Shown piece by piece: positions 710 through 63,745 of a DNA stretch of 64,000 nt. The stretch's first letter is position 1. The number at the start of each line of letters is the position of its first letter. The position numbers and the translations under genes were made by a program. The notes under the pieces were generated by a model. It worked only from the letters and a program-made list of their open reading frames with translations, was not told the origin of the DNA and made no database searches. The stretch is taken from the sequence record NC_029103.1. One strand, 5' to 3'.

Positions 710-956
710 TTTTATTCCCAATACAAAATTCGTGGGTCGAGATATAAATCTTTTCCTCAAACAGATGTTTTAGACAGTGCTGACTTCCTCCTCGTCCTTC
801 CAAGGCAGAGTAGCTCACTCTCTTTGTTTTTCCATTTTTTACGTTATTTCTGCCTAACTGGTTGGGCATAACCGTCAATATTCAACATCACCAGAGTAGA
901 AAAAGCGAAACGAAAAGCTTATTAATTCGTCAAACAGATGTTTTAGATGAAGAAAA

Positions 957-1325
957 ATGGTGGTTTCAGTAGTCCTTCCAGGTTTAAGCGGTAGAAAGGC
1001 AAAAATAGCAGGGTCTATTGTCAAAGTAACGTTTGGATCAGCCGATTTCGACGTTCCAAAAATAGCAATAGCACTACTAATCGTCGGTGTGATCATAGGT
1101 CTTTCAGGACTTATCCTATCCATCTTCGCCACCGCTACTGCAGGAGCAATCGCCAATCCACAACCAGGAACATTAGCATACAACATGACACACCCATTAG
1201 TCGACGGTATGGTATCGTTCTTCAGCTTCTTCCCAACGTTGTATGTACTCTTAGGCGTAACAGGAATAGTATTAATCGCGGCAGGAATAATATCCATAAT
1301 AATGGACAAATTCAAGACGGGTTAA
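957..1325 (+). CDS. Major capsid protein of spindle-virus type (hydrophobic helical hairpin with basic N-terminal extension)
   Basis: Two long hydrophobic helices joined by a loop with an N-glycosylation sequon (NMT), and a basic N-terminal leader. Same architecture as SSV1 VP1 and the SMV1 capsid protein. TATA-like element upstream, pyrimidine tract downstream. Confidence 0.75.
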   Translation: MVVSVVLPGLSGRKAKIAGSIVKVTFGSADFDVPKIAIALLIVGVIIGLSGLILSIFATATAGAIANPQPGTLAYNMTHPLVDGMVSFFSFFPTLYVLLGVTGIVLIAAGIISIIMDKFKTG

Positions 1326-1425
1326 AACTCTAAAGTTAAACACGTATTTTTTCGTTTATCCATTATCTTCTTCCTCCTTCTTCTTCCTCCTCTTTTTAAT
1401 ACTTTTGTGCTGTTAAGATATTAAC

Positions 1426-2274
1426 ATGGGTCTAAAAACACCACCTTCAAACGTAAGTTTGACAAACACTATAACTATAACCCCACCACCACACACTACT
1501 CAGCAACAGCTTAGTCCTTTTTCGTTATTCCAAATGTTGCTATCTCCACCATACGTCTACATTTTCATCGCCTTAGGTGTGCTAATTGTAGTATTCATTG
1601 TCGTACTCTTAGCGTTCAGGAAGTCATACGCAAAAGACCCGATAAGAAGTGGACTAATACGACAAATCCGTCGTTCTAAGAACAGTGACGTNGTAGTCGT
1701 GAACGTCGATATAGCTACCAGGTCTGCCCAGTTATATATCGGTGAGAAATTGTCNCCNTCNNTNTACACAATCCACGACCCGGTTACAGGAGAGGAGCTG
1801 ATAGTTCCGGTAACCTCTGAGTCTATGGTAGGGATGATACAGTACGGAAAGATACACAGACCGCTGTTAATCACAATAAGGAAAAGTAATACAATGCCGT
1901 TTGCAATAAGGTTAGAGACGTTAGAAACATCAATACCTGTGTCTGAGTATGATACTGCAGAACCGGAACTGTTAGCACAGTTGGCAAAGGTCAAAAAGAT
2001 GATTACCGGTACTATAACGTTGTCTCCTACGACAAAGCTTGCTATTGCTGTTGACCCTAAGTTGTTATTGAGCAGACGGCTATCGCAGGAATTGGAAATA
2101 CTCAGTACAATACCAACGGCAGTTAAGGAGATGAACACAAACTTAGTGAAGTTATTGAAGTTGCAAAATGAGAGTAAGCGTGTACAAACGATGGGTAGAA
2201 TAATGCTATACTTCGTTATCGGCATAATGGCGATGATGTTCCTTGCAGTGCTGTTCGGTTTACATATAATTTAA
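1426..2274 (+). CDS. Membrane protein with N- and C-terminal TM helices
   Basis: Hydrophobic segments at about aa 42-64 and 257-281; adjacent to the capsid gene. Confidence 0.7.
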   Translation: MGLKTPPSNVSLTNTITITPPPHTTQQQLSPFSLFQMLLSPPYVYIFIALGVLIVVFIVVLLAFRKSYAKDPIRSGLIRQIRRSKNSDXVVVNVDIATRSAQLYIGEKLXXXXYTIHDPVTGEELIVPVTSESMVGMIQYGKIHRPLLITIRKSNTMPFAIRLETLETSIPVSEYDTAEPELLAQLAKVKKMITGTITLSPTTKLAIAVDPKLLLSRRLSQELEILSTIPTAVKEMNTNLVKLLKLQNESKRVQTMGRIMLYFVIGIMAMMFLAVLFGLHII

Positions 2275-2374
2275 CCTATTTTTTTCCCCTTGTCTCTGCT
2301 TCTACAGTCCGTTAGTGTCGAGTAAGAAAATTTTTAATAGCTACGAGCAAACATATGTTTGAGGGATGTGAAAA

Positions 2375-4645: not shown

Positions 4646-4690
4646 TAATATTTTTAAACCATTACTCAAACATATGTTTTGGGGAAAAAG

Positions 4691-5092: not shown

Positions 5093-5133
5093 CCACAGCG
5101 TTACGTTCATCTATTTCTTTCATAGTTATCGTT

Positions 5134-5388
5134 ATGTTTACGATAATATTCATTATAGTCTTCGGTCTCCTTGTGTACTTTTTCAACGTCTTCAACACTG
5201 CACAGTCTCAAGTGTCTCAAACCGTTCATCCTACGAACAATATTTCACATGCAGTCTCCGCTGATATACATAATGCTTATACAGGTTTCGTCCCATACGT
5301 AAACTACTGGATGTACGGACTTGGAATAGGTATAGTTGTAGCTCTCATTTTTATTATAGCGACATCGATTAGGGAGGAAGGTGAATGA
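5134..5388 (+). CDS. Small two-TM hairpin protein, possible minor capsid paralog
   Basis: Two hydrophobic helices around a polar loop with sequon NIS. Confidence 0.6.
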   Translation: MFTIIFIIVFGLLVYFFNVFNTAQSQVSQTVHPTNNISHAVSADIHNAYTGFVPYVNYWMYGLGIGIVVALIFIIATSIREEGE

Positions 5389-5717: not shown

Positions 5718-5782
5718 TAGACCTAATGGGGAGCAACAAAAATCTCGTAATCTTTAAAACAGCTGTTTAAGAGATATATTTA

Positions 5783-8700
5783 ATGAGTGAGAATACTGTC
5801 CCACAACAGATAAACCAGCTACTCTCTCAGGGCAATTATCAGCAAGCATTACAGTTAGCACAAAAATACGGTTTAACCGAAACAGCACAAGAAATCCAAG
5901 CGTTAATATACGTACAACAGGCGATTAACAACGCAGAGAACGGTAACCTCGACCAAGCATTAACTGATTTGCAGAACGCACAGAAGTTAGACCCTGAAAT
6001 AAACTTACAACCCTATTTCGCTTATCTCAACGTTATCCAGCTTTTCGATTCTGCGAATGAGGCACTGAAGAACGATGACTACAACACCGCTTTAACTGAC
6101 CTAAACCAAGCTCTACAAATAGCTCAACAGTACCCGAATGTGATCAACGTATCGCAAATACAACAACAGATACAGACAGTGCAAGCTCTGCAACAGATAA
6201 ACCAGTACATCAATAACGCTAACAGCGAACTGGAAAAAGCAAATTTCGCACAAGCTTACCAGTACCTTCAGCAAGCCTTACAACTGGCACAACAAAACAA
6301 TATCAGCGACAAGAGACTCGAAAACGTAACAACAGCCGTTTCATTCTTAGCGAAGATACCTCCGTTCCCACAACCACCGGAAGGAGAAATAACATTACAA
6401 GAGTTGCAACAGTACTTACAATCACTGAAATCATACTTCTCCACAGCATCACAGTACGCTACAGAAGCGTCACGGTATTACAACGGTTTTTCAGTCCTTG
6501 CAAACGGTTACCAACAGTCAGAACAGGTCAGTTCTCAGCTCCTGGATGTTGTTAATCTGTTAGTCTATGCACAAGATATTGTAGAAGGAAAGAGAAGCGT
6601 ACCAATGCCTGTACAGGATAAGAACCAAATATCTGAAACACAATACGCAATAAATCTTATACAACAAGCACAGGAACAATTAGGCAACATTAACGCTAAC
6701 GACACACCATTAGCAGGTTTAGCGAATTCGTTATCCGAAACTGCCCAGAAAATGTATACTATATACACTGCTTACTTACAAGTACTTGAGGACATAGGAG
6801 AAGCACAACAAGAGGCAGTAAATGGGAACTATTCTCAAGCTGTTCAGTATCTTCAACAGGCGTCACAAATAGCACAACAGAACGATATTACGATAAACTT
6901 AACTAACTATATTCAAGGTTTTACGGTTTTAGAGGGCTTACAACCATTACCTAAGCAACCTTCTAAACAAACGTTCCTTACTCTTTCTCAATATTTCAAC
7001 AGTGTGTATCAGGTTCTTCAGCAGAACTACCAGGTTTTGGAAAAGGCTTCTAAATACCTTCAACTAAATTTACAGGCAGTCCAAGGTGACATCCAGGACG
7101 CTAAGAACATATCGCAAGCCATGCAGTTGTTAGCAGAAGCCCAGTTTTTACTTACACCATCACCAAACAATACATTAGTCACCAATGTTGTGAACAAAAT
7201 TCGGCAAATTTTTGGCTCATCATCAAACAACACATCATCGTCCTCTAATATCATAAGCATGATTCTATCGAATAAGGACACAATTCTAAACAATATTTCG
7301 CAAGCTCTGCGGTTACTGAGCGAAAGTGAGAGCTACGATATGCAAAGTACCGCTCAACAGCTGTTTGAAATGGCACAAAAATACCAAGCCCAAGTGCAGA
7401 CTTACTTGGCAGGACTTGAGAAGACTCAGCAAACACTAGACGCCTTGAACACTGTAAACTCACTCGTAACTCAACAACCAAATGCTAATTCCCCGTCAGC
7501 ATACTTTCTGGCTTTACAAAACAACTATACCGAAGCTCTTAGAGTGTTAAAGAACGCAATGTCTTCCGCTATGCAAGCTAACTCTCTCTTCGAACAGATT
7601 AATGCTACACCACCGTTTGATATGAACCAATTTGAAAATGAGGATGTTGCGTTAGAGCAGTTCATTCAGCTCTTCGGGACTACTGCAAGTGCATATTCGT
7701 CAGTTGAAAGTTTATTAAACAATCAAGGTAACTTAAGTACTCCCTCAGATTACGCGAAGTATTACCAGAACGTAGCCTCCACGATACAGATGGCAATACA
7801 GCAAATAAATGCATTAAGGATTAGTGACAACGATGTTGTACAAGTAAGGCAACAAATAATTCAGTCGTTGCAAGAAAACGAGACTAACTACCTGGCTTTA
7901 TCGAACGCCTTTAACATAATAGCCCAAGCAGGGAATTCTCCACAGTCCTTAGCTCAAGCTTACAAGCAAGCATCACAGTACCTTTCTCAGTACCAAGCAC
8001 TTCAGTCTGTTGCACAACAATTCGCAAATATGAGCGAATTCTACACTCTCATTGCACAGGCTAACGGACTCCTTCAACAAGCGAGGAACACCTCCTCTCT
8101 TAGTACCGAAATTTCTCTAATGGAGCAGGCAAGGGAATATCTACAACAAACGCTCCAATACGTCCCGTCTAATTCACAAGCATATCAAACCATTCAGAAC
8201 GAGATATCGAATATTAACAAAGCAGTAAGCGTATTACAGAATGTACAACCCTTGCAACAACAACTAAAGAACGCGTTAAATAACGGGGACTGGTTATCTG
8301 CTTTATATTATTATAATGAATTATTGCAAACAACACAAGGTACTAACATAAACAACGTGATTACCGATGTATCACAAAATAACTACTTTAAAGCGATACA
8401 AGACGTTAACAACAACTCATCACTTCAACCGCAACAAAAACAGTTCTTGAACAGCCTTATAGCTACGGCAGGCATTAACACGTATTACTTGCCTCTGATG
8501 CAGTCCTCACTACAACAGGCTCAGTCACAAGCGTCTTCTTTGCAATTGTCCAATACCTTCAATTTCGCCGAACAGATGCAACCAGTAGCCAATGACTTGC
8601 AGAACGCACTTCAGTATGCTCAGGATGCTGAGAACTTAGCACAATATGTTTCTCCTCAGCTACAACAGAACTTATCCCAAGTCGTGTCAAAGATCCAGGA

Positions 8701-11700
8701 GAAGTATAACGCAATTGAGGAACAGATACATAGTGCCGAAAGTAATTGGCTACTTAACGGGTTTGAAGGTTTTGTTAACACTTTTAACACCGCTATAAAC
8801 GACCTGATGAACGATATTAACAACTTTATTTATTCACATTTAGGTAAGAATACTTTCACTGAAATCTTGGCAGGGATCGTTGACGGTGCCATATTTGTAG
8901 CAATCTCCGCTATTCCTTATGTCGGGCAAGCCTTCGATGTATTGTCGTTGATATCTTTTGTTGGTAGTATAGCATTTGATTTGTTAGCTGGTTCTGCGTC
9001 ATATAACGAGACGGTTAATTCCTTCAAACAGATGTTTACAAACCCAACGTCAATATCAACGATAGTGACACTGATAACTGGTGTACTTGCAAGAAAGTTG
9101 ATAGAACCAGACGAGGTAGCCACTACTGACATAACTAAGACTACGGACAGCGTGAAAACAGTCCTGTCAAAAATTGAGGATTCTATAAAGGACAAGGTCG
9201 ACATATCAAAAATAAGTGGTAAGGTAACTGATACTGTCAAAACAGACGTAATCAAGTCCCCAGACTTCTCAAAAATTAATGAACCTGGTGAAAGAGGTAA
9301 AGATAGATAAGCTAGACATTAAGGCACTGAAGAAATTAAGTAACAAGATGGTAAAGATTGAAGGGGACGCATANNAATTCGTTGATACTGATATATCCGA
9401 CACAAAGATTACGATAACAACTTCATACATTTTAAAGGACGTAAAACTGAAGGCGTTTGACGGAGCAAAGAATATTGTAGTAAAGTTAAGCAAAGACTTT
9501 GATAAGGGTATAGAAGTTAACGTTACACCGAAGCTTATTGACGATGTTGATAATGCAGTTGCNACATTTGAAAANGGNNAANTCAAGNTCACAACGNTNA
9601 NNGAAGAGACCATAAAGAACGCACTNTCTTCAAACGATTTAGNCACAGCTCTGGACACTATCAAAACTAANNTGNCNGNGACTGTCGNCAAACAACTGCT
9701 TGATGAACTCAAAACGNAAGACGGCAACATAGTGAAAATATCCCCAGACGAGGGCATNGCNTATNTCGGTGGTAAATTCTACGATGTGTTCTACAAGGAC
9801 GGCACACNAGNGAAGATGGANGNGATANATGACGNTNTNGCATTAGNTAAGCTAGAAAAATTCGNAGAGGACACTGTAGGTAACTTCGTAACGCTTAACA
9901 AGAACTTGATAGAACAACTGTTGAAGAACAACGAAAACTTGCGGACTATCGAATACCAATTAACAAATAAGCTTACAGGCAACGTTGTAAGGAATGAGTA
10001 CCTGAGAATTAAGGACTTATTAGGGAATGAGACAAAGTTCACGTCCAAAACTGAGATAAACCCTAACGAAATAAAATCAATTAATGAAATTGAAGGAAAG
10101 AATCTACCTGAAATATCTCAAAGTTCTGGGTATTTAACACCACAGGAAGTCGATAATCTACTCAGCTTTGATAACAAGTTTTCGCAGATATTCAGGCAAC
10201 TAATTGATGAACANCCNGAGGTCAAAGACTTACTTGAGAAGTTAGCGTCGAAAGGAAAATTGCCAGCTAGTTTNANACNACTTGAAGATATAGCTGATAA
10301 GATAGAATCATTTTACGANGCTCTGGACAANGAAGTGAAAGATATAGAGAGCAAGTTAAGCAGTAACCCACTATTCGACGGTGTAAAATGTCTCGAGTGT
10401 TGTTAAGTCTATTGCGGAAAAANTAGTAAAGAATAAACCCAGATGACGTACTGGACGGCGANGTACCTAAGATNTCACTATCAGATGTCCTAGACCGCTT
10501 AAGCACAGCAGATAGGGCTAAAGTAGTGTTGAATTACCTGAAGACAGACCCTAAGGTATACGAACGAGGTAATGCAAAAAACTGAGCAATTTCTCTAGCT
10601 GATACTAGAGATTACATACTAGCCCAAGCATACGACCAGATTGCTATAGCAATGAAGAATAATAAACCGATAACTGCCGATGGACTGGAAAACGTAGTTT
10701 GCAGATATAGACGACGCTATAGAAAATATAGAAAATATAAAGTCCTACAGAATCACAAACACCTGTTTCAACAACAAACACCACTTCTAACACTACCACC
10801 TCAACAACAACAACTACAGAGGGTACAGCTTCGAACAGCTCTTTCAAACGGCACATCAACAGTCCTACAATCATCAGAACAACAGCAAGGAGGGGTATTG
10901 ACGAGAGTNTCTCTAAANNCAATGGTAGAAAACGCCTTATCGAGCCTATTCCCAGATTTCGAAAAACTNCCGTCAACTGTGAAAACGTTATTTGAGAACA
11001 TTGTCCTCAGGGAGTTAGGCGAAAAAGGAGAACTAACAACAGAAGACATAACGAAAGCATTAGAGGACGCAAAAGCAGAGTATCAAGCGATATTGGACAG
11101 CATCAAGAAGATGGTTAATGACGTTAAAACTGAAGTGAAGACTAGNAGNGAAGAAGAAAACATTGTAAATAACCTGGACACTAGTATAGNCGANCTGGAG
11201 AAAAAAGTAAAGTTTGATGTGAAAAAGCTGTCGCAATTCTTGTCTATAGCTAGTTTCGTAGCAGACATGTTTAACGTCGCAACAGCAGTTGAACTTATAA
11301 CACAACTGAATGCACTCACTCCCCAACAGTTACAGCACACGATTATCCTTACCCAACCTCAGCTGGAGACAATAACTAGTATTGCCCCAACAATTAAGGA
11401 ACTAATCGTAAAGTTGGACAAAGGCGTGAAACTAAAAGACTTACAAGGTATAGCAGTGCAAATTAGGGACGCTTTGCAGAAGATGGGGATTAATATCGAC
11501 GTCGAACAGTTGCTAAGGATAATTAGTGTGTTACAAACTATAACTAAGGAGTTCAATTTACAAATTAGCGAGATAGCGTCTCTTATCGCTATAAACGATG
11601 TTAACGGTTTAACTGTTATTCCTATACCCGTCATATCAGGTATTACGTCACTGATTACGTCTATCCAGACTGGAAACACTACCACAATAACTGGAAACAC

Positions 11701-11935: not shown

Positions 11936-12159
11936 AAGTGACGGTAGTTAGCTAGAGCCAGTTCGAATTAACGTAATCTTTTTTCCTTACTTCGTACTTT
12001 TTTCCGTATATAGCATTTCGAACTTTTGCCTCTTTTTCTTCCCCTTCACCTGGTTTCAACAGTGCGAAATTAAAACAGCAGTGGAAGCCCGTCCTTCGGC
12101 TCCAGTTTCCCCTCAAACAGATGTTTATATTTTTTTAGCCTGCTTGAAAATCTTATGAT

Positions 12160-32569: not shown

Positions 32570-32665
32570 AAATCCTCACTTAAAAAAATTCTGAGACGAT
32601 ATATATAAGCCTTTCTTAAACAGCTGTTTGAGGTTTATATACCGGTTTTTAGAGTATAAAATAGT

Positions 32666-33283: not shown

Positions 33284-33865
33284 CTAACGTGGAATATTTA
33301 TATTCATCCTGATGAACTGTAATGCTTTCAGTAACTGTGTTTTCTTCTCAGTTACGCATTCTCTATAGTACTTCGCCGTGCATTTCTTCTCAATAGTGTT
33401 TTCGTCTATACCTAATTCGCTGACAAGCGTCTGATATAACGACGTCCCCTTAATACTGCTAATCATAGTAGCCGTCCTAATTTGCACGTCCTTTAGGATG
33501 CTAAGCACGGTGAGTACGTCAAATCCGTTGGGATTAACGAATTTCGTCAGTACATCTATCAGATACGAACTTTCAGCAACAAGTCCTTCCTCGTTGACGT
33601 AAAACAGATGTTTTTTCCCTGTACTGTTCAGTATTTTCGTAATCAACGACTTAACGTCCTCGCCAGAAGCATTCATCACGATGAACATAATATCGCAACC
33701 GATCTTCAGTATCTGCCTTAGTTCGTCCTCAGATGTAGCACTTTCATATTTTTTGAGGACTAATTCCCTCCACAGCTCTTCTATCTCGTCACTGTAATAT
33801 GTGAGCATTATAGTGTTTAGCCTTTCTATGGCTAAGGTAGGATATACCATGCTGTTGTTCCCCAT
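33284..33865 (-). CDS. Hypothetical protein
   Basis: 193-aa ORF. Confidence 0.6.
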   Translation of the reverse strand: MGNNSMVYPTLAIERLNTIMLTYYSDEIEELWRELVLKKYESATSEDELRQILKIGCDIMFIVMNASGEDVKSLITKILNSTGKKHLFYVNEEGLVAESSYLIDVLTKFVNPNGFDVLTVLSILKDVQIRTATMISSIKGTSLYQTLVSELGIDENTIEKKCTAKYYRECVTEKKTQLLKALQFIRMNINIPR

Positions 33866-35804: not shown

Positions 35805-35894
35805 GAAGGAATTCCTCTTAAACAGATGTTTGAAAGTTGACTTCCTCCCCCCGGGTCATTCGACTTTTTAAAGCTATCACGCGAAGAATCTAAC

Positions 35895-38294: not shown

Positions 38295-38440
38295 ATTTGG
38301 TCAATCATATGTATGCCAACGAGAATATTTAAGTTTTCTGCATAACCCGTTAGGAGGAAAAGCGGGTTGAGGTGTGTGGTGAGGAGAGAGGAAATAAGAC
38401 CTCAAACAGTTGTTTGAGAGAAAGAGGGAATAAAAAAGAA

Positions 38441-38893
38441 CTAGCAAACTTCAGCAGTTGATCTAATTTTAATTATATACCTGCCAGAAGACAGTTTTTT
38501 AGAATATATTTCGTAATACACTGTACACCAACCAACGTATTCGTTATGATAATCCCTACCTTCAATTAACAACTTTAGTTCTTGTAATGCCTTATCCTTC
38601 AATGTCTTTGCTTTCTTCTTCTTTTTGTTTTCCCACATTACTTCTAATTCATAACCAAGATCGGGGTCTGGGTCATGTTCAAACGTATAGTGCATGTCAA
38701 GTTCTTCATAACTTTCAGCGATAAAACCACAAAGTTTGCAAAAATACAATTTGTTTTCTTCTTGAATTTTATTTTTCTTCTGAGTAGTGCTACTTCCCAT
38801 GGTTTTCGCCACTATAGTATTCGTTATGGGAATATATAAAATTTCTGCCAAACAAGTTAGGCAGTAAATGTTAGAACAAACGTGGTAAAACAA
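38441..38893 (-). CDS. C2H2 zinc-finger protein (true start probably about 38800)
   Basis: FCKLCGFIAESYEELDMHYTFEH. Confidence 0.65.
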   Translation of the reverse strand: MFYHVCSNIYCLTCLAEILYIPITNTIVAKTMGSSTTQKKNKIQEENKLYFCKLCGFIAESYEELDMHYTFEHDPDPDLGYELEVMWENKKKKKAKTLKDKALQELKLLIEGRDYHNEYVGWCTVYYEIYSKKLSSGRYIIKIRSTAEVC

Positions 38894-39193: not shown

Positions 39194-39338
39194 GGCACTT
39201 AATTACTGGTAAGTCTGGTATTTAAAATTTCTGCTCAACAAGTTAGACAGAATCGACGAGCTGTGTACACTGAAAACAACTCTAAAACAGCTGTTGTTTA
39301 AAATCGGATTAAAAGAGAAGGAGAAGGGAAAAAAAGAA

Positions 39339-39587: not shown

Positions 39588-40316
39588 TTAGGTAGAAAGT
39601 TTACGCAAAATATCCAGGGCGTCTTTCGTTTGTGTGTACTGTATAATTCTTTCTAACTTCCTATGTCCGGTTATCTTCGCGATAAGTGCTGGGTCTGTAG
39701 CATTTTTTGCCAGGAAGGAAATCAGTGCATATCGCAACGAATGTGTGTTGCACTTCAGGTATTTCAGTGCGAACATCCTTATTCTTGCTTCCAGTTTATC
39801 GTCATTGATGGTCAGTACTGATTTGTAAGCTAGTCTGTTCCTGATGACATCGGGGATAATGAAGAACCTCGTGTTGCCGTGCTTTTCTGCTTGCAGTTGA
39901 AACTCTCTTTGCCCCGATTCCGCAAACGTCTTAAATGCCCTAATTGCCTCACCTATCCTAGCACCGTTTAACAGCTGTATGAGCAGAATGGCAACGTACG
40001 CCTCGTAGGGCATCAAGTTCAAATCAAACAGCTGTTTGTACGCAGACGTGAGGACTTTCTTGGCTTCGAGGAAATCTACGCTGTAGTCCCAAGTATGCTC
40101 TATCTTCTTCTTGCCGAGCGGTCTCAGAATTCTCTTGAGTACCTCACTTTCCTCTCTCTTTCCTTTCTTCTTCTCCTCCTTCAGTCCTAGTTTTACAGCT
40201 ATCATATCAACGATATCCTTCCATCCCTTTTCCTTAGCTTCTTTAAGGTACTCCAAAAGCTTAGGGGAGTTGTCGGGAAGGTTTAGAATAATTTGCTTAA
40301 GTTCGTCTTTGTCCAT
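39588..40316 (-). CDS. Tyrosine recombinase/integrase (Xer-like, not the SSV partitioning type)
   Basis: Catalytic residues NGAR, K, HSLR, TGH and QY are all present. Confidence 0.92.
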   Translation of the reverse strand: MDKDELKQIILNLPDNSPKLLEYLKEAKEKGWKDIVDMIAVKLGLKEEKKKGKREESEVLKRILRPLGKKKIEHTWDYSVDFLEAKKVLTSAYKQLFDLNLMPYEAYVAILLIQLLNGARIGEAIRAFKTFAESGQREFQLQAEKHGNTRFFIIPDVIRNRLAYKSVLTINDDKLEARIRMFALKYLKCNTHSLRYALISFLAKNATDPALIAKITGHRKLERIIQYTQTKDALDILRKLST

Positions 40317-42125: not shown

Positions 42126-42296
42126 AATAATTTTTCTTTACTTTCTTTTTGGTCTCTATTTTCTGTGATACTCATATTATTTCTTTTCCCCTCCCCGTTT
42201 CTTTCTCCTCGGCTTCTTTCGTGTTGTCGATAATTTCAAACAGCTGTTTAAAAGCTTAAATATTCGCCTACCGAATGTTGTTGTAAGGGTCGAAAA

Positions 42297-42713: not shown

Positions 42714-42842
42714 TCTAAGCTAATTTTTCGTTTCTCTACACTGTCCTTAACCCCACCTGGGTCTGCTTCTTGCAGACTGACAGTACCCTCAAACATCTGT
42801 TTTATTTAAATACTAGCACCTATAATACTTTATTGAGGAAGG

Positions 42843-43535: not shown

Positions 43536-43594
43536 CCTCTAAAACAGCTGTTTAAGTTAAATATTAGGACGAATAATATTTTTCCCGAGGGAAT

Positions 43595-44431: not shown

Positions 44432-44511
44432 AAACAGATGTTTAAGTTAAAATTGGGTCGTTCACTGCTCCACGTCTTCTATTTAAAAACAAACTGGTAG
44501 AAGGTAATGAT

Positions 44512-46430: not shown

Positions 46431-46682
46431 CGAATAAGTCTAATTTTTCCTTTTCTTTTCTCCGTTTTTCATTAGTCAAGTTCTAGGGTGAAGGGGCAAC
46501 TACTAATTCTAACAGCTGTTTGAGAGTGAACGAAAGACCGACCCCTTAAAACCGAACTTTTCCGTGCAGGTAGGAACCCAGACATGGTGGATACGGATAT
46601 GTTTTCAGATAGTTGTTCCACGCCTTCTTTTCGTCTCCAGGGTTTCTCATCTCCTCCACCAGCTTCCTAACNANGNCTTTAT

Positions 46683-47132: not shown

Positions 47133-47577
47133 GTAGAAATATTGTANNANNANTAATATTTTATTTACCCCGTTTATATCTGTGGTTCTTTTTTATACNA
47201 GTAGCGATATTTTATTTACGTAGATATTTATTGAGACAGTTCTTATATTTANAGTGATATTTTCCCTATCAAATTTTATTCTATGCTACGAGTNATAATA
47301 ATATCTCTCACTTGTAAAAGATTTTCAATAATAATATTTTACATGTTTTGTTTTTGCTCAATAACATGCCAAATTCTCAAAATGTTTCGATTTTNNTAGC
47401 CAAACTATTTGGTTGAGGGAAATCGTGAATACGTAGAACTATGGTTAAGGTAAATTAAGCAGTTTTGAAGGACTGGGAACTAACCTATTATACTAATTAA
47501 ATATAAACAAAAACATATTTTCAAAAAGCCGACTTCTTCCCCTGCCANGGCAGGTCTTTCAGTCCCTGGCACTGAAT

Positions 47578-48624
47578 CTATGATGAATGCGTCAACCGTA
47601 TCTTGAAACTGTGAACGCGGGGATGTTTAAACACCAGAGTCCTCAGGACATTGTATGTAAGCTTTTTGACATGCCTCTCTTTTCTGTATGTATACTCTAC
47701 AATAAAGCGACCAAAACCTATTTTGTAGTCTTGTTGTTTTTTCTTTTTCTTCTCTTCTGACTTAGATTTTGCATCAAACTTCGGAAAAGCCTCATAAACC
47801 TCTCTTGCCTCTTTCCTACGTTGTTTTTTCTTTTTCTTCTCTTCTGACTTAGATTTTGCATCAAACTTCGGAAAAGCCTCATAAACCTCTCTTGCCTCTT
47901 TCCTGCGGTTGTCTCTTAGGAGAAGCAGTATTACTGCTATTTTGATAACGTGTATATTATTGATTTTTGAGAACTTATCAAGTAGATTTAGGTAGCCGTA
48001 CTTATGCAGAAGATTGTATTTGTACTCTTCTATGAACTTTCTGCGTATTTCTGCTTTCGCTTTTATTTCAGCTTCTGATAAATACAGTTTATGATTTAAA
48101 ATATAATTCAAATTCTTTATCGTATTGGATAGTTTTTGTCTTGCGTTATCCTCATCGTCCTGAGTGAAATTCAGAATAATTGGTATGACAGAGTCAAATT
48201 CAACGTTACAGTACTTTATAGCAAAAGCACCGATGATATACAGCTTTCCTCTTATTTTGTTGTTGGCAATTACTTTTTCTGCAATTGTTGTAAAGAGAGC
48301 TTTTTGTGTAGAATTTGTAATTAAAATAGATAGTCTATACGCGAACGTATAGTAATTTTGTTTTCTTTCAAAAAACTTTGTAGGAAGAGTACCAATACCT
48401 CGGTTTGGTAAGAGAGCGTAATGGTGTTGGTAATGAGAATAGAGTTTATCGGCTTTAGATTCTTTTTCTAGTCCTTCCGTGTTAGTAACTAAAAACATGT
48501 CGTAGTCATAGTCAATAACTTCCCCCGTATCCGCACAGACGGTGTAGATACCGTCTGTGATGATTTCTTTACAATTGTCTGTTTGAGTTAGACTGATTTG
48601 GTTATGAACGATAGCTTCTGTCAT
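47578..48624 (-). CDS. Divergent TFB/TFIIB-like protein
   Basis: Ribbon-like C...VCADTGEVI, reader-like LLPNRGIGT and cyclin-like KIRGK...GAFAIKYC in TFB order. Confidence 0.55.
   Translation of the reverse strand: MTEAIVHNQISLTQTDNCKEIITDGIYTVCADTGEVIDYDYDMFLVTNTEGLEKESKADKLYSHYQHHYALLPNRGIGTLPTKFFERKQNYYTFAYRLSILITNSTQKALFTTIAEKVIANNKIRGKLYIIGAFAIKYCNVEFDSVIPIILNFTQDDEDNARQKLSNTIKNLNYILNHKLYLSEAEIKAKAEIRRKFIEEYKYNLLHKYGYLNLLDKFSKINNIHVIKIAVILLLLRDNRRKEAREVYEAFPKFDAKSKSEEKKKKKQRRKEAREVYEAFPKFDAKSKSEEKKKKKQQDYKIGFGRFIVEYTYRKERHVKKLTYNVLRTLVFKHPRVHSFKIRLTHSS
47734..47904. repeat. Near-perfect 87-bp tandem duplication (29 aa) inside the TFB-like gene
   Basis: RRKEAREVYEAFPKFDAKSKSEEKKKKKQ occurs twice. 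Confidence 0.95.
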
Positions 48625-48811
48625 ACTGAGTCTCAGTCATAAACAGCTGTTTAAAAATATTTAACACCATTAACAGGGTAGTATCCTTGACAAAACAAAC
48701 GGCAAGCATAGCCCCTTCTAGGGGAGGACGTCAGACGGAGCTAATTATCCTTGAGAAAGAATACAAGAAGATGATGAGGAAAAAAGGCAGGGTAAAAATT
48801 AATTTGATTTA

Positions 48812-49051: not shown

Positions 49052-49241
49052 GTTATTCCCTAGTCTATATGTTTTTAGTTGATATTTTAAGCTTTCTGTC
49101 AAACGAGTTAGGATGATACTGAGGGTAAGAAAGAGAAGTGGAAATAGACATTAGAAGAAGGAGAGAGAAATGGATTAGGTTAGGGGCTAAAAATAGAAAG
49201 GATAAAATAAAAAATAACGTAACTTGGTACCGTTATAACCG

Positions 49242-49418: not shown

Positions 49419-49547
49419 TTTTCCCCGGTTTAAGTATTACTCTTGGTTGGTATTTAAGCTTTCTGGCTAACGAGTTAGGACGAAAGGGCGAGACGGTTAG
49501 AATGACTCTGTATAACAGCTGTTTCATAAAAAATGGGGGTTCAAAGC

Positions 49548-50485: not shown

Positions 50486-50682
50486 TCTGCCCTCCATTTT
50501 ATACTCTCAAACAGCTGTTTAAAAATGTTCTGCCATGAACCGCAGGGTAGCACGAATGATTTCCTCACTGATTGAAAACCTTAGGTATCAAGGAGCTGAG
50601 AAAAAGAGTGTAAAGCAAAGGAAAGAACGGAGCGAATAATATAAAAATAAGAAATGTATAATATAGGGGGAGGGGAAAAGAG

Positions 50683-51366: not shown

Positions 51367-51988
51367 AAAAGGCAGAGGGTCTGTCATCTAATTCTATCAA
51401 CTATTTTTCTCAGTCTTGTAATAAATATTCAGAGGACATTAAACTTCAAAATTAATTTCAAAATAATTCTTCTACCTTTTATAAAATTCTTTACAATTCA
51501 ATCTTGTAAAGTTGTGACTTATTACAAAATTTTCACATAGAACTACACTATTTTCATTTTATTTCTTTATATTAACAGAAACTCTGGAAAGACGTGAACA
51601 GAAATAAATTACAATTATTAAGGGAATGAACAGATATTTTTCCTAAAATAACGTGTTTTATAAAGAGAAATTTTTAGGATAAGGGCAAAAATTAACGACG
51701 TGAACAGAACCAGGGTGACTGTTGCACGTATATAGTATACTGTAAAAGTAACTATATCTAATAATCTAATCTAATATAAGGAACTACTAGGACGAGCTAC
51801 TGCAAAGTACGTAGTTTTTAGTAAAGGCAGTACACACTACAGCACACCACTGTACGCTACAGCACTCCAACCTGGCTTTAACACACCCTTACTTTTTGTT
51901 TATTATATTAAGGGGTTAATTTCGCCGAGTTGTTACTTTTTCACTAAGTCTCTTAGTCTAGTGATAAAAATTAGGATAAAGTTATAAA
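51367..51988. other. Long AT-rich non-coding region, candidate replication origin
   Basis: No ORF of 60 aa or more; GACGTGAACAGAA at 51591 and 51697 plus related AACAGA(A) copies; CTACAGCAC twice near 51840-51865. Confidence 0.4.
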
Positions 51989-52282
51989 TTGAGTTTTGCA
52001 TATATTCAAATTATGAAAAACATTTCGGGAAACAAGTATAATAATACTATTGCTCCTATGACAGAGGAAGAGTACGTAAAAGCGAGGGAATTCTATAAGT
52101 TTCTAGTAAGTATAACCAAGTGCAACAATGGGATCTTGACAATCGACAGGGAGAAGCTGATCGATATTGCATCTGCTTATATGGACTGTACTCCCATTGA
52201 GGCATACAACATACTGCTGAAGATGAAATCTTACGGCTGGGTAATTGCTTTAGATAAAGACTACATTGCAGTTAAGGTCTGA
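51989..52282 (+). CDS. Winged-helix-like DNA-binding protein
   Basis: REKLIDIASAYMDCTPIEAYNILLKMKSYGWV fits a wHTH followed by a wing. Confidence 0.6.
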   Translation: MSFAYIQIMKNISGNKYNNTIAPMTEEEYVKAREFYKFLVSITKCNNGILTIDREKLIDIASAYMDCTPIEAYNILLKMKSYGWVIALDKDYIAVKV

Positions 52283-52649
52283 CTTTCTTTTCGCGAGTGT
52301 TCTCCGCTCGGTTCTGTCTCAGCGGGCTGAGGTTGTCTGGCTATCCCTAAAACAGCTGTTTGTGGATTCATTTTCATGATCATCCCAGCTCACTCGCCAA
52401 ACTTGTATCGCCCTTTTTTGAATCATTAACTTTTTATCTGAATTTAACTTAGATTTAAACTGACCCATATATCACACCTCTTTTTTCTGATTTGTGACGA
52501 AGACGGAAAAACGGATTATGACGAGAGGAGTCCCAACATCCTCCTCTCCTTTTCCATATTTTCTTAATATTCGAGCTTCCCGTCGCGGTTCTGTCCAACT
52601 CGTTAGAGATTTAAATAACAGCATGGAGGAGTAGAAACTGGGGTTTAAG

Positions 52650-53240: not shown

Positions 53241-53377
53241 CGGGTTTTTTATCATACTCTCTCCTAAACAGCTGTTTTAGAGTTTCTGCTCACCTGCTCG
53301 CCCGTCGCAGTTCTGCTAACCTGTTAGGCAGAAAATTTATATACCAGACTGCAAAGAGTATAAGTGGGGATAAAAAA

Positions 53378-53836: not shown

Positions 53837-53845
53837 GTGATCAAG

Positions 53846-53989: not shown

Positions 53990-54145
53990 AAGCCAGCCCG
54001 TTTTTTTATGCTCTGCTCTCTCAAACAGCTGTTTGAGAATTTTAGCTTGCCTGCCCGCTCCTGCCCGCTCGGATGTTTCTTCATAACCTGTTAGGCAGAA
54101 AATTTATATATCAAACCGACGAAGTATAAATGTGGTGGTAATATA

Positions 54146-54499
54146 ATGAGATGTTTTAAGGTTCAGGAGGTAATTTGCGTAGATGAAGAAGAAAAGATCA
54201 TGATAAACCTTACAAGGAGAAAATATAAAATTTTAAAGGACGAGGAATACTTCAAATTAATAGAGGAGTTAGAGAAGTACGGTAAAGAGTTAGAAGTTTT
54301 CGTCATAGCAGATCATCGGTACTTTCCAAGGACTTATTATGCTATTTATAGTATCAAGGTCGGTACANCNATATACTANTATTTTNTGGANNTTTANGAC
54401 GGTAGNAGTGCANNNTATTCNTATNNTTTNTGNAAGNNAAGNAANGAATGNGAGAGTANCATTAATGACTTAGAAGAAGANAACATAGCGATGNNNTAA
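54146..54499 (+). CDS. Acidic protein, paralog family D (copy 1)
   Basis: YFPRTYYAIY motif; CTAAC-type promoter. Confidence 0.65.
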   Translation: MRCFKVQEVICVDEEEKIMINLTRRKYKILKDEEYFKLIEELEKYGKELEVFVIADHRYFPRTYYAIYSIKVGTXIYXYFXXXXDGXSAXYXYXXXKXXXEXESXINDLEEXNIAMX

Positions 54500-54549
54500 T
54501 TNATTTTTTCTTTTTTGTTTTCTCTCTAAAACAGCTGTTTGAGGTATTT

Positions 54550-55786: not shown

Positions 55787-55866
55787 AAGGAGATTTTAGA
55801 CCCTGGAATTAAAAAACATATGTTTTAGCTCCAAGGGCTGGGGGGGGGGTAGGGAAGGCCCTTGCT

Positions 55867-58078: not shown

Positions 58079-58263
58079 CCTTTATCCCCACTTATTTCCT
58101 TATAATAATATATTTAAAAGTATGAACATGACTCCAACCAGTTAGGTATTTCTCTTGGTCAGTCTCAGACCAGTATGTTGGCTTTGCCAGTGAGTGCTTA
58201 GCAAATCACTCAAACATATGTTTTAAATATCTGTTTACCAACGATATACATAGGAGGATAGAA

Positions 58264-60580: not shown

Positions 60581-60612
60581 AACTTTTTCCTAACTCAACC
60601 TACTTATGTTCA

Positions 60613-60654
60613 AAGGAGAGTGGGAAGCCTTGCCCTTTAGAGCGGGGTAGCTCA
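60613..60654 (+). mobile_element. Solo IS605 right-end remnant
   Basis: GGGAAGCCTTGCCCTTTAGAGCGGGGTAGCTCAC. Confidence 0.7.
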
Positions 60655-60726
60655 CCCTGTCTTGTGCTGGATAAAAGCACCTGTTTTCTTTAAATATTTC
60701 CTTGTCAAAATTCCATTTAGATAAGA

Positions 60727-61530
60727 ATGGACACAAATGATTATTTCCTAAAAATAAGTGAGTACTGCAATTTTAATATAGACTGTATCGATAAGACGTT
60801 GTCAGATAAAAAGAAACTAGGGAAAATCTTAGGCATAGAAAATAAGAAGGAGTTAGACAACATAAGGTTTTTCATAAGCACCAATTTCGATAAATATGTT
60901 TACAGAAATTATAAAAAATTCCCGAAGGACGAAATAGCAAAGTTTATAATATCTAATATGTGCGGTTATGATTTCAAATGCATGCTAGAGATACTGAAAG
61001 AAAATAACTTACAGGACATGCTAGATTATATGCTAGATTATTGGGCTAAGACCTACGATATTGAACCCATAGTTAATGAATTTATCACTGTTTCTTTAGA
61101 TGATCCCTTGGAAGATTTAGATCATAGTGAATATACATTGCCAACTATCGCATGGCTCGAGTTTATTGATAGACCAGAAGCAAAGCTTCTTTTTGCAATG
61201 TATGATGATTATGTTCCACTTGGAATATTTGATCGTATGGAGGGAAAATATCATTATAATTATAAGGAAGTGTTCGGTGAAGAACCGGAAGATATAGAGA
61301 ATAAAATAAGGGAATTAGTAGACAAAATTGAGTCAAGAACAGAAGACCGTCTCAGAGAAATTGCAAAGAGTATTTATGATGAAACTCTTGAGCTAATAAA
61401 TAACAATCCGGCATACAAAATTGTAGATTATATAGAGTGTTATAGTTATCTGTGCTACCTGTTGGATTTGGATAAAATTCCAATAGTTCATATCGACGAG
61501 AACAGAAAAAATCAACTTCTTAATACTTAA
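60727..61530 (+). CDS. Acidic hypothetical protein
   Basis: 267-aa ORF, D/E/Y-rich. Confidence 0.65.
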   Translation: MDTNDYFLKISEYCNFNIDCIDKTLSDKKKLGKILGIENKKELDNIRFFISTNFDKYVYRNYKKFPKDEIAKFIISNMCGYDFKCMLEILKENNLQDMLDYMLDYWAKTYDIEPIVNEFITVSLDDPLEDLDHSEYTLPTIAWLEFIDRPEAKLLFAMYDDYVPLGIFDRMEGKYHYNYKEVFGEEPEDIENKIRELVDKIESRTEDRLREIAKSIYDETLELINNNPAYKIVDYIECYSYLCYLLDLDKIPIVHIDENRKNQLLNT

Positions 61531-61634
61531 CTTTCTGGGGGTTAAGGGGGCGGAAGTNCCTACCGTCCGTAAGGTGGGGGATGGATAGCCCCCTTATAGA
61601 AACCTTTTATAGTTATCAAAAAATAGATATAACT

Positions 61635-62042
61635 ATGCGGTACAGATTGGACAGAGGATCGCATTCAGTTTACGCTCTTTATTACCACTATGTCCAAGTG
61701 GTGAAGTACCGCAGGAAGGTGTTCGATAATGAAGAGATTATAAACTTCTTGAAGGAACAAATTCAAGAAATAAGCGAAACGTTCGAGGTTGAGGTCATAG
61801 ACATAGGGGTAGATAAAGATCACTTCCACATGTTATTCAAGGCGAAACCGACCCTGAATATACCCAGATACATAAACGCGATCAAGACGATCACGTCTAG
61901 GGAAATACAGAGAAAATTTCCTCAAGTAAAGGAAAAACTATGGAAAGGACACTTCTGGTCACCTTCCTACTTCCTAGCAACAAGTGGACAAGTAACACTA
62001 GAGGTGCTGAAAAAATATGTGGAGAGCCAAGGGAAAGAGTAA
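61635..62042 (+). CDS. tnpA: Y1 HUH transposase TnpA
   Basis: HFHML HUH motif; FWSPSYFLAT with catalytic Tyr. Confidence 0.93.
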   Translation: MRYRLDRGSHSVYALYYHYVQVVKYRRKVFDNEEIINFLKEQIQEISETFEVEVIDIGVDKDHFHMLFKAKPTLNIPRYINAIKTITSREIQRKFPQVKEKLWKGHFWSPSYFLATSGQVTLEVLKKYVESQGKE

Positions 62043-63257
62043 CAAGATCCAGTTATCATTCAAGTACAGGATTTACCCAACTAGGGAAGTAGAGGAAAAA
62101 CTCCTCAGAGTGATGCAGGTTGAGGCTAAAGTGTACAATGCGTTGCTAGACGCAGTGAATAACGCAAGGAAAGAAGGGAAAAGGATAACACCTAAGGACA
62201 CCCAAGACATGTTGAAAGACTTGAAGATAGAAGGGAAGGAACTAGTTTACTCCAAGGTTCTTCAAATGGTGAATAATCAANTGTGGTACAACATTAACTC
62301 TCTTCACGAACTGAAGAAGAGAGGGAAGAAAGTGGGGAAATTGAGGTACAAGAAGATCATGAAGATCATAAACTACAATCAATCNGGTTTCAAGGTAGTT
62401 GGAGATAANCTNATNCTCTCAAAGATAGGGGAGATGAAAGTACTCTTCCACAGACCGTTAGAAGGCGAGGTAAAAGGGGTAATAATAAAGAAGAGTGCTA
62501 AAGGATGGTATGCTATCTTCCAGGNTGAGGTNGAAAAGANACCTCTNGAAAAAACTGGGAAAGTNGTTGGNATAGACTTAGGAGTGGAGAAACTGGTAAC
62601 TACTTCTGANGGCGTAGTGATAGAAAATCCTAAGGTCTTTGATAAGGTAGAGAGGAGGATAAAGATTTTACAAAAATCATTATCAAGGAAAAAGAAGGGA
62701 TCTAGAAACTACGAGAAGGTTAGAGAAAAACTAGCCAAGATACANGAGTATGTGAAGAATCTCATGAANGATTATATTCACAAGGTAACTTCGTGGCTCG
62801 TAGAACAGTATGATGAGATATACGTGGAAGATCTCGATGTGAAGGAGATGGTTGAGGACAGTGANAGNAAANNTTTGANAAAGCATATTCTCCACTCTAA
62901 CTTCTCCAAGTTCATNAGCNACCTCTCCTACAAGGCTGAAAGAGCTGGTAGGAGGGTGGTGAAGGTAGATCCGAGGAATACTTCAAAAAACATGTGCTAG
63001 ATGCGGATACGTTAAAGAAGGATTTAACGTTGGTTGACCGTGTGTTTGTATGCCCAAAGTGCGGTTGGGTCACTGATCGCGACTATAATGCTTCTCTAAA
63101 TATTCTTCGTGCGGGGTCGGGACTGCCCTTAGAGCCTGTGGACAGGAAACCTCTGCTATACATCCCCTTCTCAGAGGGGGTGTATAGTAAGTTTCCTGGA
63201 AGAAGCAGGAAATCCCCATCGCGAGGTGGGGATGCCCCGTCCGTGAGGGCGGGGTAG
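62017..63257 (+). CDS. tnpB: RNA-guided nuclease TnpB (extra A in the A6 run at about 62990 splits the C-terminus)
   Basis: RuvC IDLG, YVEDL and DRDYNA; zinc finger C.RCG...CPKCG is restored by removing one A. Confidence 0.92.
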
Positions 63258-63378
63258 TTCACTACTTAACCCTATTTTTTATACTATCTCCTTTAGTGTT
63301 TACCCCTGGCGTAACTCTCCTTGCATTCGGTGAACCGAATCTTCCTCTTTTTAAAATAATCTGATAAGAACATTAATC

Positions 63379-63705
63379 ATGGGGAAAAAGATCGTCTCAT
63401 TTAGACTAGAACGAAGTGCAGTTGAAGCTATTGAGTTTAAGACTAAGAATAAATCTACGTTCATGAGAGACGCTATAAACTACCTCCTCCAGGAAGGTAT
63501 AACAAAGGATGATATCCTAAAAATAGCCTCATCAATCCCGGTAGACGAGAAGAAACAGGTAAGTGTAAAAATTGATGAAGAGACGTTAGGCAAACTAAAA
63601 CGGATTGCGGAAGAAAACGGTATACAGGTAAGTGAGCTAGTAAGAATATCAATATGGAAACTCCTCATGAAAGAAGGGCTTGTTAGCTCCATACAACCCC
63701 AATAA
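63379..63705 (+). CDS. Tandem double ribbon-helix-helix DNA-binding protein
   Basis: IVSFRL...NKSTFMRDAI and QVSVKI...QVSELVRISI. Confidence 0.8.
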   Translation: MGKKIVSFRLERSAVEAIEFKTKNKSTFMRDAINYLLQEGITKDDILKIASSIPVDEKKQVSVKIDEETLGKLKRIAEENGIQVSELVRISIWKLLMKEGLVSSIQPQ

Positions 63706-63745
63706 ACTTTTTTCACTGTTTAAACATATGTTTAAGTGATGCGAA

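Follow-up and report, generated by a model that had tools for sequence, protein, structure and literature searches.

The genome of Sulfolobus monocaudavirus SMV3 (KP282677/NC_029103; 64,323 bp, circular) carries at least two kinds of palindrome in its promoters, the first of which, AAACANNTGTTT, is the subject of the present analysis. The window, i.e., the whole stretch of 64,000 nucleotides analysed, spans record positions 324-64323 (window coordinate = record coordinate minus 323), and its first 20 kb are 100% identical to SMV3 by megablast. Gene positions were taken from the RefSeq annotation (87 coding sequences), and 14.4% of the window is non-coding. The palindrome recurs at the promoters of both major capsid protein genes, of other virion genes and of numerous accessory genes, and its placement, together with the versions found in related viruses, points to a putative virus-encoded master switch of viral gene expression.

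AAACANNTGTTT is present in 31 exact copies, for 0.15 expected from dinucleotide-preserving shuffles (a maximum of one copy in 100 shuffles) and 0.22 under a first-order Markov model. Twenty-five copies are intergenic, one lies over the start of the tiny open reading frame (ORF) gp12 and five are within genes, an intergenic excess over the non-coding share of the window with a binomial P of 2.7e-16. The first-pass annotation of this DNA had counted at least 28 exact copies, about 26 of them intergenic, and had called for a comparison with shuffled controls; its counts stand and the enrichment is real. It had also treated the two central positions as free, which requires correction. In 28 of the 31 sites, the choice is limited to G or T at position 6 and to A or C at position 7 (GC 12, TA 8, GA/TC 8), and the palindrome reaches about 18 bp, the full element being CTC-AAACA-KM-TGTTT-GAG. 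The flanks are themselves symmetric, with C at -2, T at -1 and C or A at 0, mirrored on the right side; comparison of the 31 sites reveals no sequence conservation past about 3 nt on either side, beyond which the DNA looks random. Twenty-two more copies with one mismatch are found in the window (10 intergenic). The element is therefore a short, dyad-symmetric site over-represented relative to composition, as an operator would be, and an 18-bp palindrome with a restricted K-M centre is as expected for a protein dimer whose half-sites would be about one helical turn apart.

The position of the site relative to the core promoter defines four classes (Table 1). First, in class A (n = 6), a strong B recognition element (BRE) and TATA box of the GAAAAG-TTTTTAA type is followed after 5-10 nt by the site, then by 5-14 nt containing a GAGG-like Shine-Dalgarno sequence and the ATG. 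Second, in class B (n = 5), the AAACA half belongs to the TATA box itself (TTTTTAAA; TTTTTAAACA), and the ATG is found 20-25 nt past the TATA, a spacing that suggests leaderless mRNAs. Third, class C sites (about 10) lie at or beside the BRE, their ends 0-10 nt 5' of the TATA box; sites 32618 and 55814 are each common to two divergent genes. Finally, the class D sites directly follow the T-run of the upstream gene, about 50 bp 5' of a different palindrome and its TATA box. With start sites inferred from TATA/ATG spacing, the palindrome of the 11 class A and B promoters, and of several TATA-fused class C sites, falls within the footprint of the pre-initiation complex. The three position classes distinguished in the first-pass annotation hold at the coordinates that it quoted, including the placement of sites 932, 2349, 4668, 15938 and 21705 between TATA and ATG.

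Coverage of the genome is considerable without being complete. Among the 67 promoter-like regions of SMV3 (genes with at least 30 nt of non-coding DNA upstream), 28 (42%) contain an exact site and 8 more a site with one mismatch (54% in total), while 31 contain none, so that the initial impression of an operator at almost every transcription unit was too broad. All major virion-gene promoters are among those that bear a site. The identity of the centre follows position rather than gene class: TA is found in 5 of the 6 class A sites, while GC is found in 4/5 class B sites and, when 54529 is grouped with these, in 5/6 TATA-fused sites (Fisher P = 0.015 for the 5/6 grouping). The proposed division into TA-centred sites at structural genes and GC-centred sites at accessory genes fails when assessed by genome half (Fisher P = 0.17, not significant) and survives in this positional form. 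It is plausible that CATATG is better tolerated than CAGCTG where the site overlaps the region that must melt.

The second palindrome, CTGCC-TAAC-NN-GTTA-GGCAG, is fused with GCAGAAA-TTAAATA at the promoters of gp46, gp47, gp48, gp62, gp63, gp68, gp69, gp71 and gp79, about 50-60 nt 5' of the start codons. It corresponds to the regulatory sequence that Bhoobalan-Chitty et al. (2024) described for early/anti-defence genes (ADG), and their supplement lists SMV3 gp46, 47, 48, 62, 69 and 71 (PMC11065993); judging from promoter sequence, the class appears to extend to gp63 (the aCcr1 homologue), gp68 and gp79. The 'inverted repeats overlapping the BRE' reported for SMV2 in the same work are of ADG type (PMC11065993). 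Like AAACANNTGTTT, the ADG sequence is a virus-specific inverted repeat at core promoters of the same genomes (SMV2, SMV3, SMV4) and a proposed repressor target (PMC11065993). The two are nevertheless distinct, and identity of our element with the published repeat was rejected: CTGCC(T)AAC..GTTAGGCAG overlaps the BRE of strong early promoters, its AAC-GTT gap is 2 nt instead of the 4 nt of AAACANNTGTTT, and it occupies another promoter set, none of the ADG-listed promoters having AAACANNTGTTT in its core. With two palindromes on separate promoter sets, SMV3 has at least two promoter classes, each with an operator of its own.

Table 1. Palindromic sites and candidate binding proteins of the SMV3 window (window coordinates; A to D, position classes as defined in the text)
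Feature	Position	Strand	Context	Support or remarks
Class A, CAGATG centre	932..943	.	gp03 promoter: TATA, 6 nt, site, 13 nt, ATG	kept in SMV1, SMV4, SMV2
Class A, CATATG	2349..2360	.	gp05 promoter, TATA-ATG interval	exact match, cross-SMV alignment
Class A, CATATG	4668..4679	.	promoter of major capsid protein gene gp06	exact match, cross-SMV alignment
Class A, CATATG	15938..15949	.	promoter of second major capsid protein gene gp16	exact match, cross-SMV alignment
Class A, CATATG	18352..18363	.	gp19 promoter (minus-strand gene)	exact match, cross-SMV alignment
Class A, CATATG	21705..21716	.	gp22 promoter (minus strand), 5 nt from ATG	exact match, cross-SMV alignment
Class B, CAGCTG	5757..5768	.	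fused with TATA of virion protein gene gp09	cross-SMV alignment
Class B, CAGCTG	22257..22268	.	fused with gp23 TATA	cross-SMV alignment
Class B, CAGCTG	48641..48652	.	fused with TATA of gp61 (TFIIB-like protein gene, marginal match)	cross-SMV alignment
Class B, CAGCTG	50509..50520	.	fused with gp65 TATA	exact match, geometry
Class B, CATATG	63722..63733	.	gp87 promoter; starts 17 nt past gp86 stop codon	cross-SMV alignment
Class C	759..770	.	10 nt upstream of gp02 TATA (minus strand)	geometry
Class C	12115..12126	.	fused with TATA-like ATATTTTTTT; 33 nt 5' of ATG 12160 opening the long gp14 ORF	tiny ORF gp12 annotated here
Class C	32618..32629	.	divergent gp35/gp36 promoters; TATA boxes 9 and 4 nt off
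Class C	42238..42249	.	6 nt 5' of gp53 TATA	gp53 homologue: none in SMV1/SMV4, weak in SMV2
Class C	42791..42802	.	2 nt 5' of gp54 TATA	gp54 SMV3-only among compared genomes
Class C	43542..43553	.	3 nt 5' of gp55 TATA	gp55 SMV3-only among compared genomes
Class C or distal	44432..44443	.	5' of gp56, begins right after gp55 stop	cross-SMV alignment
Class C	55814..55825	.	between divergent gp74/gp75; fused with gp74 TATA (tgtttTTTAATT)	cross-SMV alignment
Class C	58212..58223	.	fused with gp80 TATA (tgtttTAAATAT)	geometry
Distal	35820..35831	.	between divergent gp42/gp43, 27-36 nt from TATA boxes	cross-SMV alignment
Class D	38404..38415	.	about 50 bp 5' of early/ADG-type palindrome and TATA of gp46
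Class D	53266..53277	.	just past gp68-ending T-run; about 45 bp 5' of gp69 ADG-type palindrome
Class D	54023..54034	.	just past gp70-ending T-run; 5' of gp71 ADG-type palindrome
Class D-like	54529..54540	.	after gp71 T-run; ADG-type palindrome and TATA 45-75 nt downstream, inside annotated gp72 start region
Non-promoter intergenic	52350..52361	.	68 nt past gp67 stop	same position relative to gp67 homologue in SMV1, SMV4; two beside ATV/ATV2 homologues
Coding	9026..9037	.	in gp09	kept at orthologous SMV1 position (9003)
Coding, CACCTG centre (atypical)	10757..10768	.	in gp11	SMV1 site 10735
Coding	23347..23358	.	in AAA ATPase gene gp24	SMV1 site 23880
Coding	33602..33613	.	in gp38	SMV1 site 34638
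Coding	40026..40037	.	in integrase gene gp50	same codons in ATV and ATSV integrase genes
ADG-type palindrome	about 38343-38352		gp46
ADG-type palindrome	about 38850-38860		gp47
ADG-type palindrome	about 39236-39246		gp48
ADG-type palindrome	about 49100-49110		gp62
ADG-type palindrome	about 49468-49477		gp63
ADG-type palindrome	about 52596-52606		gp68
ADG-type palindrome	about 53317-53327		gp69
ADG-type palindrome	about 54084-54094		gp71
ADG-type palindrome	about 58135-58145		gp79
gp67, 89 aa	52013..52282	+	best candidate binder	orphan, probable winged helix
gp86, 108 aa	63379..63705	+	rival candidate	single-chain tandem ribbon-helix-helix
gp61, 348 aa	47578..48624	-	own promoter has a class B site	SMV-specific; marginal TFIIB/TFB-like fold

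Several features of the annotation touch these sites. The gene gp14 probably starts upstream of its annotated position (12286): the ORF opens at ATG 12160 (879 aa), 33 nt past site 12115, which belongs to class C if this start is the true one. The SMV1 counterpart (site 12073, gp10 start 12117) has the same layout. The tiny opposite-strand ORFs gp12 and gp13 that overlap the 12115-12286 region are doubtful. So is the annotated TTG start of gp72 (54550), downstream of which a palindrome of ADG type, CTTCTAACGAAACTTGTTAGG, and the TATA box GCTTAAATATT suggest a later start. The site in the integrase gene gp50 may be explained by conserved protein sequence. A G10 homopolymer (GGGCTGGGGGGGGGGTAGGG) is found beside site 55814, at 55830-55850 between the divergent gp74 and gp75. 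The SMV3 genome is metagenome-derived and contains runs of N (at about 5150-5200, 19200, 54400-54470 and elsewhere), which yield X residues in predicted gp15, gp29, gp42 and gp74 and could hide further palindromes. Finally, three unusually long non-coding stretches, namely 51367-52012 (646 nt), 46431-46682 (252 nt) and 47133-47577 (445 nt), are devoid of either palindrome class.

Conservation extends first to the other monocaudaviruses. SMV1 and SMV4 contain 28 and 30 exact sites, respectively, and in upstream alignments of SMV1, SMV3 and SMV4 the site and the TATA box stand out as conserved islands amid diverged DNA, i.e., the site is kept at orthologous promoters while its surroundings drift. 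It is also found 5' of gp53, gp54 and gp55, genes without homologue in SMV1 and SMV4. In SMV2 most orthologous sites have decayed, and 17 position weight matrix hits remain for 0.3 expected. A scan of IMG/VR for the perfect 18-mer returned 30 stretches; every multi-copy contig is SMV-like (0.35-0.7 sites/kb), and four unrelated contigs have one perfect 18-mer each. The same scan over one genome per prokaryotic species (185,579 genomes), which covered the site in its most stringent form only, returned 88 single hits with a scattered distribution, with no Sulfolobales among the 80 listed.

The core of the motif reaches beyond the SMV clade. ATV contains 62 CAGCTG for 11.8 expected and 44 ACAGCTGT for 1.0 expected, with a core consensus close to TTAAGAACAGCTGTTCTTAA; ATV2 contains 38 ACAGCTGT (about 1 expected), and when half-sites are counted each of the two genomes has 18 AAACAGCTG 9-mers. 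Sixteen of the 44 ATV cores are intergenic in a genome that is 8% non-coding (P = 1e-7). In the complete genome of ATSV, ACAKMTGT is found 23 times for 5.2 expected, with the consensus TGAAAAC-ACAKMTGT-GTTTTCA, and several sites lie 25-29 nt 5' of start codons (5885, 14340, 54058 and 61987). Conservation across related viruses, which the first-pass annotation had put forward as a check, is thus borne out for the core in SMV, ATV and ATSV, the flanks differing, and not for STSV2; in STSV2 and YNP1 the core is at chance level. The presence of the core in SMV, ATV/ATV2 and ATSV indicates that the system predates the SMV clade. The flanks are lineage-specific, AAACA..TGTTT in SMV1 and GAACAGCTGTTC in ATV2, two viruses whose records both name Sulfolobus solfataricus as host. 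Three lineages that share an ACA-KM-TGT core, each with its own flanks, are what one co-evolving family of DNA-binding proteins would produce.

Two further arrangements were observed in ATV. The promoters of the capsid-protein paralogues (gp42/ORF145-RIP and gp62) share CCCCAGTTTTGTT just 5' of the TATA box (20856-20930 and 48245-48320). At 18164 (18164-18210), a palindrome precedes three tandem TGTCTTAAG-like repeats.

The small protein gp67 is the best candidate for the binding factor. A family hidden Markov model (HMM) matches proteins of SMV1, SMV2, SMV3, SMV4, ATV (gp19/ORF98a) and ATV2, and distantly ATSV gp84 (1e-8), with no match in STSV2 or YNP1, which makes it the only small non-membrane protein family whose distribution coincides with that of the motif (7 of 7 motif-bearing and 0 of 2 motif-free genomes). 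The genomic context is suggestive as well: a site lies just past the 3' end of the gp67 gene in SMV1, SMV3 and SMV4, and two sites flank the homologues of ATV and ATV2. Metagenomic examples of this neighbourhood are biased, having been retrieved by the motif itself. An exhaustive HMM search of 1.84 billion representatives recovered 17 clusters, a tiny family, and gave no link to a named one. Its hits to winged-helix Pfam families are weak but consistent: ATV gp19 matches HTH_Crp_2 below threshold (E = 7e-4, 19.9 bits for a cutoff of 27), and relatives have sub-threshold matches to TFIIE_beta and DUF2250. On these hits, gp67 is a candidate and probable winged-helix protein. A homologue 75% identical to gp67 is encoded on a Sulfuracidifex metallicus contig (SRR11038956_1, gene 6676-6963). 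This contig is conjugative-plasmid-like, with matches to DUF87, FtsK_SpoIIIE, TrwB_AAD_bind and P-loop_TraG. Capture of the gene is one possibility and an action on incoming viruses another; plasmid-borne copies of this kind might interfere with such viruses. The identification of gp67 as the binding factor comes close to an even call, and we put it slightly below one.

The protein encoded by gp86 is its most serious competitor. The AlphaFold2 model of gp86 is confident (mean pLDDT 91.7), with strands at residues 3-11 and 58-66, each followed by two helices, i.e., two beta-alpha-alpha units in one chain, as in a tandem ribbon-helix-helix protein. Foldseek matched it to F-plasmid relaxosome chains (TM 0.55-0.66), presumably TraY, and one repeat to Arc; Pfam RHH_1 matches the second unit, and PHROG 876 'transcriptional repressor' is hit at 1e-27. 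The family is confined to SMV1-4 and SMV-like metagenome contigs, and its gene ends 17 nt before a class B site. Two gp86 molecules could bind each CTCAAACAKMTGTTTGAG palindrome, as Arc and TraY would, the cores of ATV and ATSV being bound by unrelated or undetectably diverged proteins. Three observations make this unlikely. ATV, ATV2 and ATSV have no gp86 orthologue although the core is enriched 9-44-fold there, and it was for this absence that gp86 was demoted as the binder; SMV2 gp86 is 60% identical with the same conserved beta-strand residues, yet SMV2 sites decay; and the promoter of gp86 itself (about 63300-63330) has a different palindrome, ATTCGGTGAACCGAAT, just 5' of the TATA box; this palindrome may be the real target of gp86, through which it would regulate itself.

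A host factor is, in our estimation, a shade less probable still. According to this explanation, a transcription factor of the Sulfolobales reads the core (AAACAKMTGTTT-like sites), and the viruses plug into a host circuit. Viruses of different host genera (Sulfolobus/Saccharolobus and Acidianus) do share ACA-KM-TGT, and the viral binder is so far a candidate only. The same-host viruses SMV1 and ATV2, however, differ in their flanks, STSV2 and YNP1 lack the motif despite being Sulfolobales viruses too, and the 80 listed hits of the species-genome scan, whose single stringent form leaves room for a looser host regulon, include no Sulfolobales. The difference in flanks between same-host viruses and this last result are the reasons for favouring a viral factor.

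A non-transcriptional role, be it genome organisation, packaging, replication/partition or a bidirectional terminator or hairpin, appears improbable. Such a role could account for the 28 of 44 ATV cores found in genes, for the several SMV3 sites located right behind T-rich gene ends, for the five coding sites kept between SMV3 and SMV1, and for the TTT with which the element ends on both strands. It fits poorly with the precise placement relative to TATA and ATG and with the intergenic enrichment in both SMV3 (P = 3e-16) and ATV. Moreover, the sites are dispersed rather than clustered. The nucleoid or packaging organiser offered as an alternative in the first-pass annotation is accordingly unlikely for SMV, where positions are promoter-locked, and is still compatible with ATV. 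A terminator or RNA hairpin was rejected on account of weak folding (mean minimum free energy of -2.4 kcal/mol for the site 22-mers) and of a T-run of 3 nt, which falls short of what an archaeal terminator usually has. A dispersed repeat, such as a miniature inverted-repeat transposable element, was rejected for want of similarity beyond the flanks of about 3 nt. Restriction-site avoidance or methylation was likewise rejected: far from being avoided, CAGCTG is enriched in both SMV and ATV, and no counterpart of gp20, the methyltransferase of SMV3, is present in SMV1 or SMV4.

Another protein, gp61, might be related to TFB, as a viral factor that has diverged greatly. Orthologues aside, the folds closest to that of gp61 are individual chains from RNA polymerase II pre-initiation complexes in the PDB, which we take to be TFIIB, and giant-virus proteins named TFIIB in BFVD, with marginal scores (E 0.02-0.6, TM 0.2-0.34). 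From its N-terminus, gp61 comprises a ribbon in which only two conserved Cys are left, a disordered linker and a helical core, to which a beta-beta-alpha-beta domain is added at the C-terminus. Sequence comparison lends no support: neither Pfam nor PDB profile searches gave a hit, and the hhalign probability with a genuine viral TFB was 2%. SMV3 gp61 also carries a tandem 29-aa duplication (RRKEAREVYEAFPKFDAKSKSEEKKKKKQ twice). That gp61, a family restricted to the SMV clade, reads the motif as an alternative initiation factor is highly improbable: class B and C sites do sit at a BRE-like position, but a palindrome that is perfect, and whose position to either side of the TATA box varies, is unlike the target of a factor that is monomeric and of fixed geometry, the core occurs in ATV and ATSV without gp61, and with a consistent but marginal fold match and null sequence profiles it was rejected as specificity factor. 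The aCcr1 homologue gp63 was also rejected. In host cdvA-type promoters, aCcr1 and its viral homologues, including the tested SMV3 gp63, bind the 9-bp aCcr1-box, A(T/G)G(A)TA(G)A(T/G)TACN (PMC9976878); the consensus of this box differs from ours, and gp63 homologues are missing from SMV2 yet present in the motif-free YNP1. As for the binders suggested in the first-pass annotation, the distribution of its winged helix-turn-helix candidate (51989/52013, i.e., gp67) fits the motif, whereas those of its two ribbon-helix-helix proteins and of its 'TFB-like' gp61 do not.

We regard it as very probable that the palindrome is a protein-binding transcriptional operator and, with somewhat less assurance, as likely that the factor is virus-encoded. 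The complete reading, in which AAACA-KM-TGTTT is the operator of a virus-encoded dimeric DNA-binding protein controlling a large part of SMV transcription, is the one that we favour, with confidence that is fair rather than high. The idea of one dimeric viral factor, already put forward in the first-pass annotation, gains from the dyad symmetry, promoter geometry, conservation and lineage-specific flanks, and loses its claim on the whole genome, given the share of promoter regions that bear a site.

The mechanism could operate as follows. A viral dimer, most likely of the gp67 family (SMV3 gp67, SMV1 gp43, ATV ORF98a, ATSV gp84), would bind the palindrome, and the flanks would co-evolve with the binding protein in each lineage. 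The footprint of TBP, TFB and RNA polymerase is where known archaeal repressors bind, and it is by analogy with them that repression is proposed at class A and B sites: the bound protein would block assembly of the pre-initiation complex, so that the strong promoters of both major capsid protein genes, gp09, gp05, gp19, gp22 and gp23 would stay off until it is removed or titrated. Class C sites could act by occlusion of the BRE or by recruitment of a factor; there, and at the majority of ATV sites, likewise 5' of BRE/TATA, activation is equally possible. More speculatively, class D sites, behind T-rich gene ends and about 50 bp 5' of early/ADG promoters, might serve as insulators or roadblocks. 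A bolder extension, which we consider rather doubtful, would have one orphan winged-helix family (gp67, ATV ORF98a, ATSV gp84) act as master regulator of the large tailed spindle viruses, silencing structural promoters while activating or insulating others, and thereby as the switch between carrier or lysogenic state and virion production in Bicaudaviridae.

Several observations weigh against this interpretation. Repression at class A and B sites is argued from position only. The spacing between site and TATA box varies (0-10 nt upstream, 5-10 nt downstream), which fits steric occlusion better than precise recruitment, and some sites, namely 35820, 52350 and those of class D, are far from any core promoter. 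Most ATV cores (28 of 44) are inside genes, and the intergenic ones, many of them midway between divergent genes, are mostly 33-76 nt 5' of start codons, a distance at which archaeal activators are more typically found. With regard to gp67, sequence searches gave no significant Pfam or PDB match, its own promoter has no site, and the match between its distribution and that of the motif involves only three or four independent lineages. SMV2 retains a gp67 homologue though most of its orthologous sites have decayed and, reciprocally, no core motif is found in the 17 kb examined of the Sulfuracidifex metallicus contig that encodes a homologue.

To our knowledge, gene regulation in archaeal viruses is documented for only a handful of factors, such as SSV1 F55, SvtR, AvtR, Sta1, RIP and the aCcr1 homologues. 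For large spindle viruses, no cis-regulatory code had been found before, and a MEME analysis of 46 ATV promoters returned the TATA box only, without binding sites (PMC5123050). Like the first-pass annotation, which was aware of none, we found no earlier description of the motif, or of this SMV/ATV promoter motif, in the searchable literature, which did not cover the original SMV1 and ATV genome papers. The present results provide a genome-wide operator map (31 sites in SMV3, 28-30 in SMV1 and SMV4, 44 cores in ATV and a variant in ATSV), a promoter geometry from which the repressed genes can be predicted, a few candidate binders, and a separation of SMV promoters into a AAACANNTGTTT type and the published early/anti-defence type. 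If correct, the proposed regulation would explain how virion genes are held back in these viruses and would offer a natural series of protein/operator variants for the study of specificity co-evolution. SMV1 can be cultured, and Sulfolobus TBP, TFB and RNA polymerase are available for in vitro transcription; with these and viruses of named host (SMV1, ATV2), the hypothesis is quickly testable.

Among known systems, the closest precedent is F55 of the fusellovirus SSV1, a small viral ribbon-helix-helix repressor that presumably silences the structural genes during the carrier or lysogenic state. In that Sulfolobus spindle virus too, several operators lie over TATA/BRE and start sites. They are tandem direct repeats at a handful of promoters, whereas the element described here is an 18-bp perfect palindrome found 30-44 times per genome, and its candidate protein is a winged-helix-like orphan for which binding is predicted only. 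In Thermococcales, a palindrome recognised by TrmBL1/Tgr (the TGM motif) or SurR activates when located 5' of BRE/TATA and represses when located 3' of the TATA box, the same positional split as that between class C and classes A and B of SMV3. Those proteins are host metabolic regulators with known ligands and no detected homology to gp67, and the TATA spacing of SMV3 sites is variable. ORF145/RIP of ATV is, like the regulator proposed here, a global transcription repressor encoded by a bicaudavirus, which binds RNA polymerase rather than DNA (PMC5123050). Undescribed in the searchable literature, the element is a new regulon of a known kind, a viral operator with its regulator, rather than a new kind of system.

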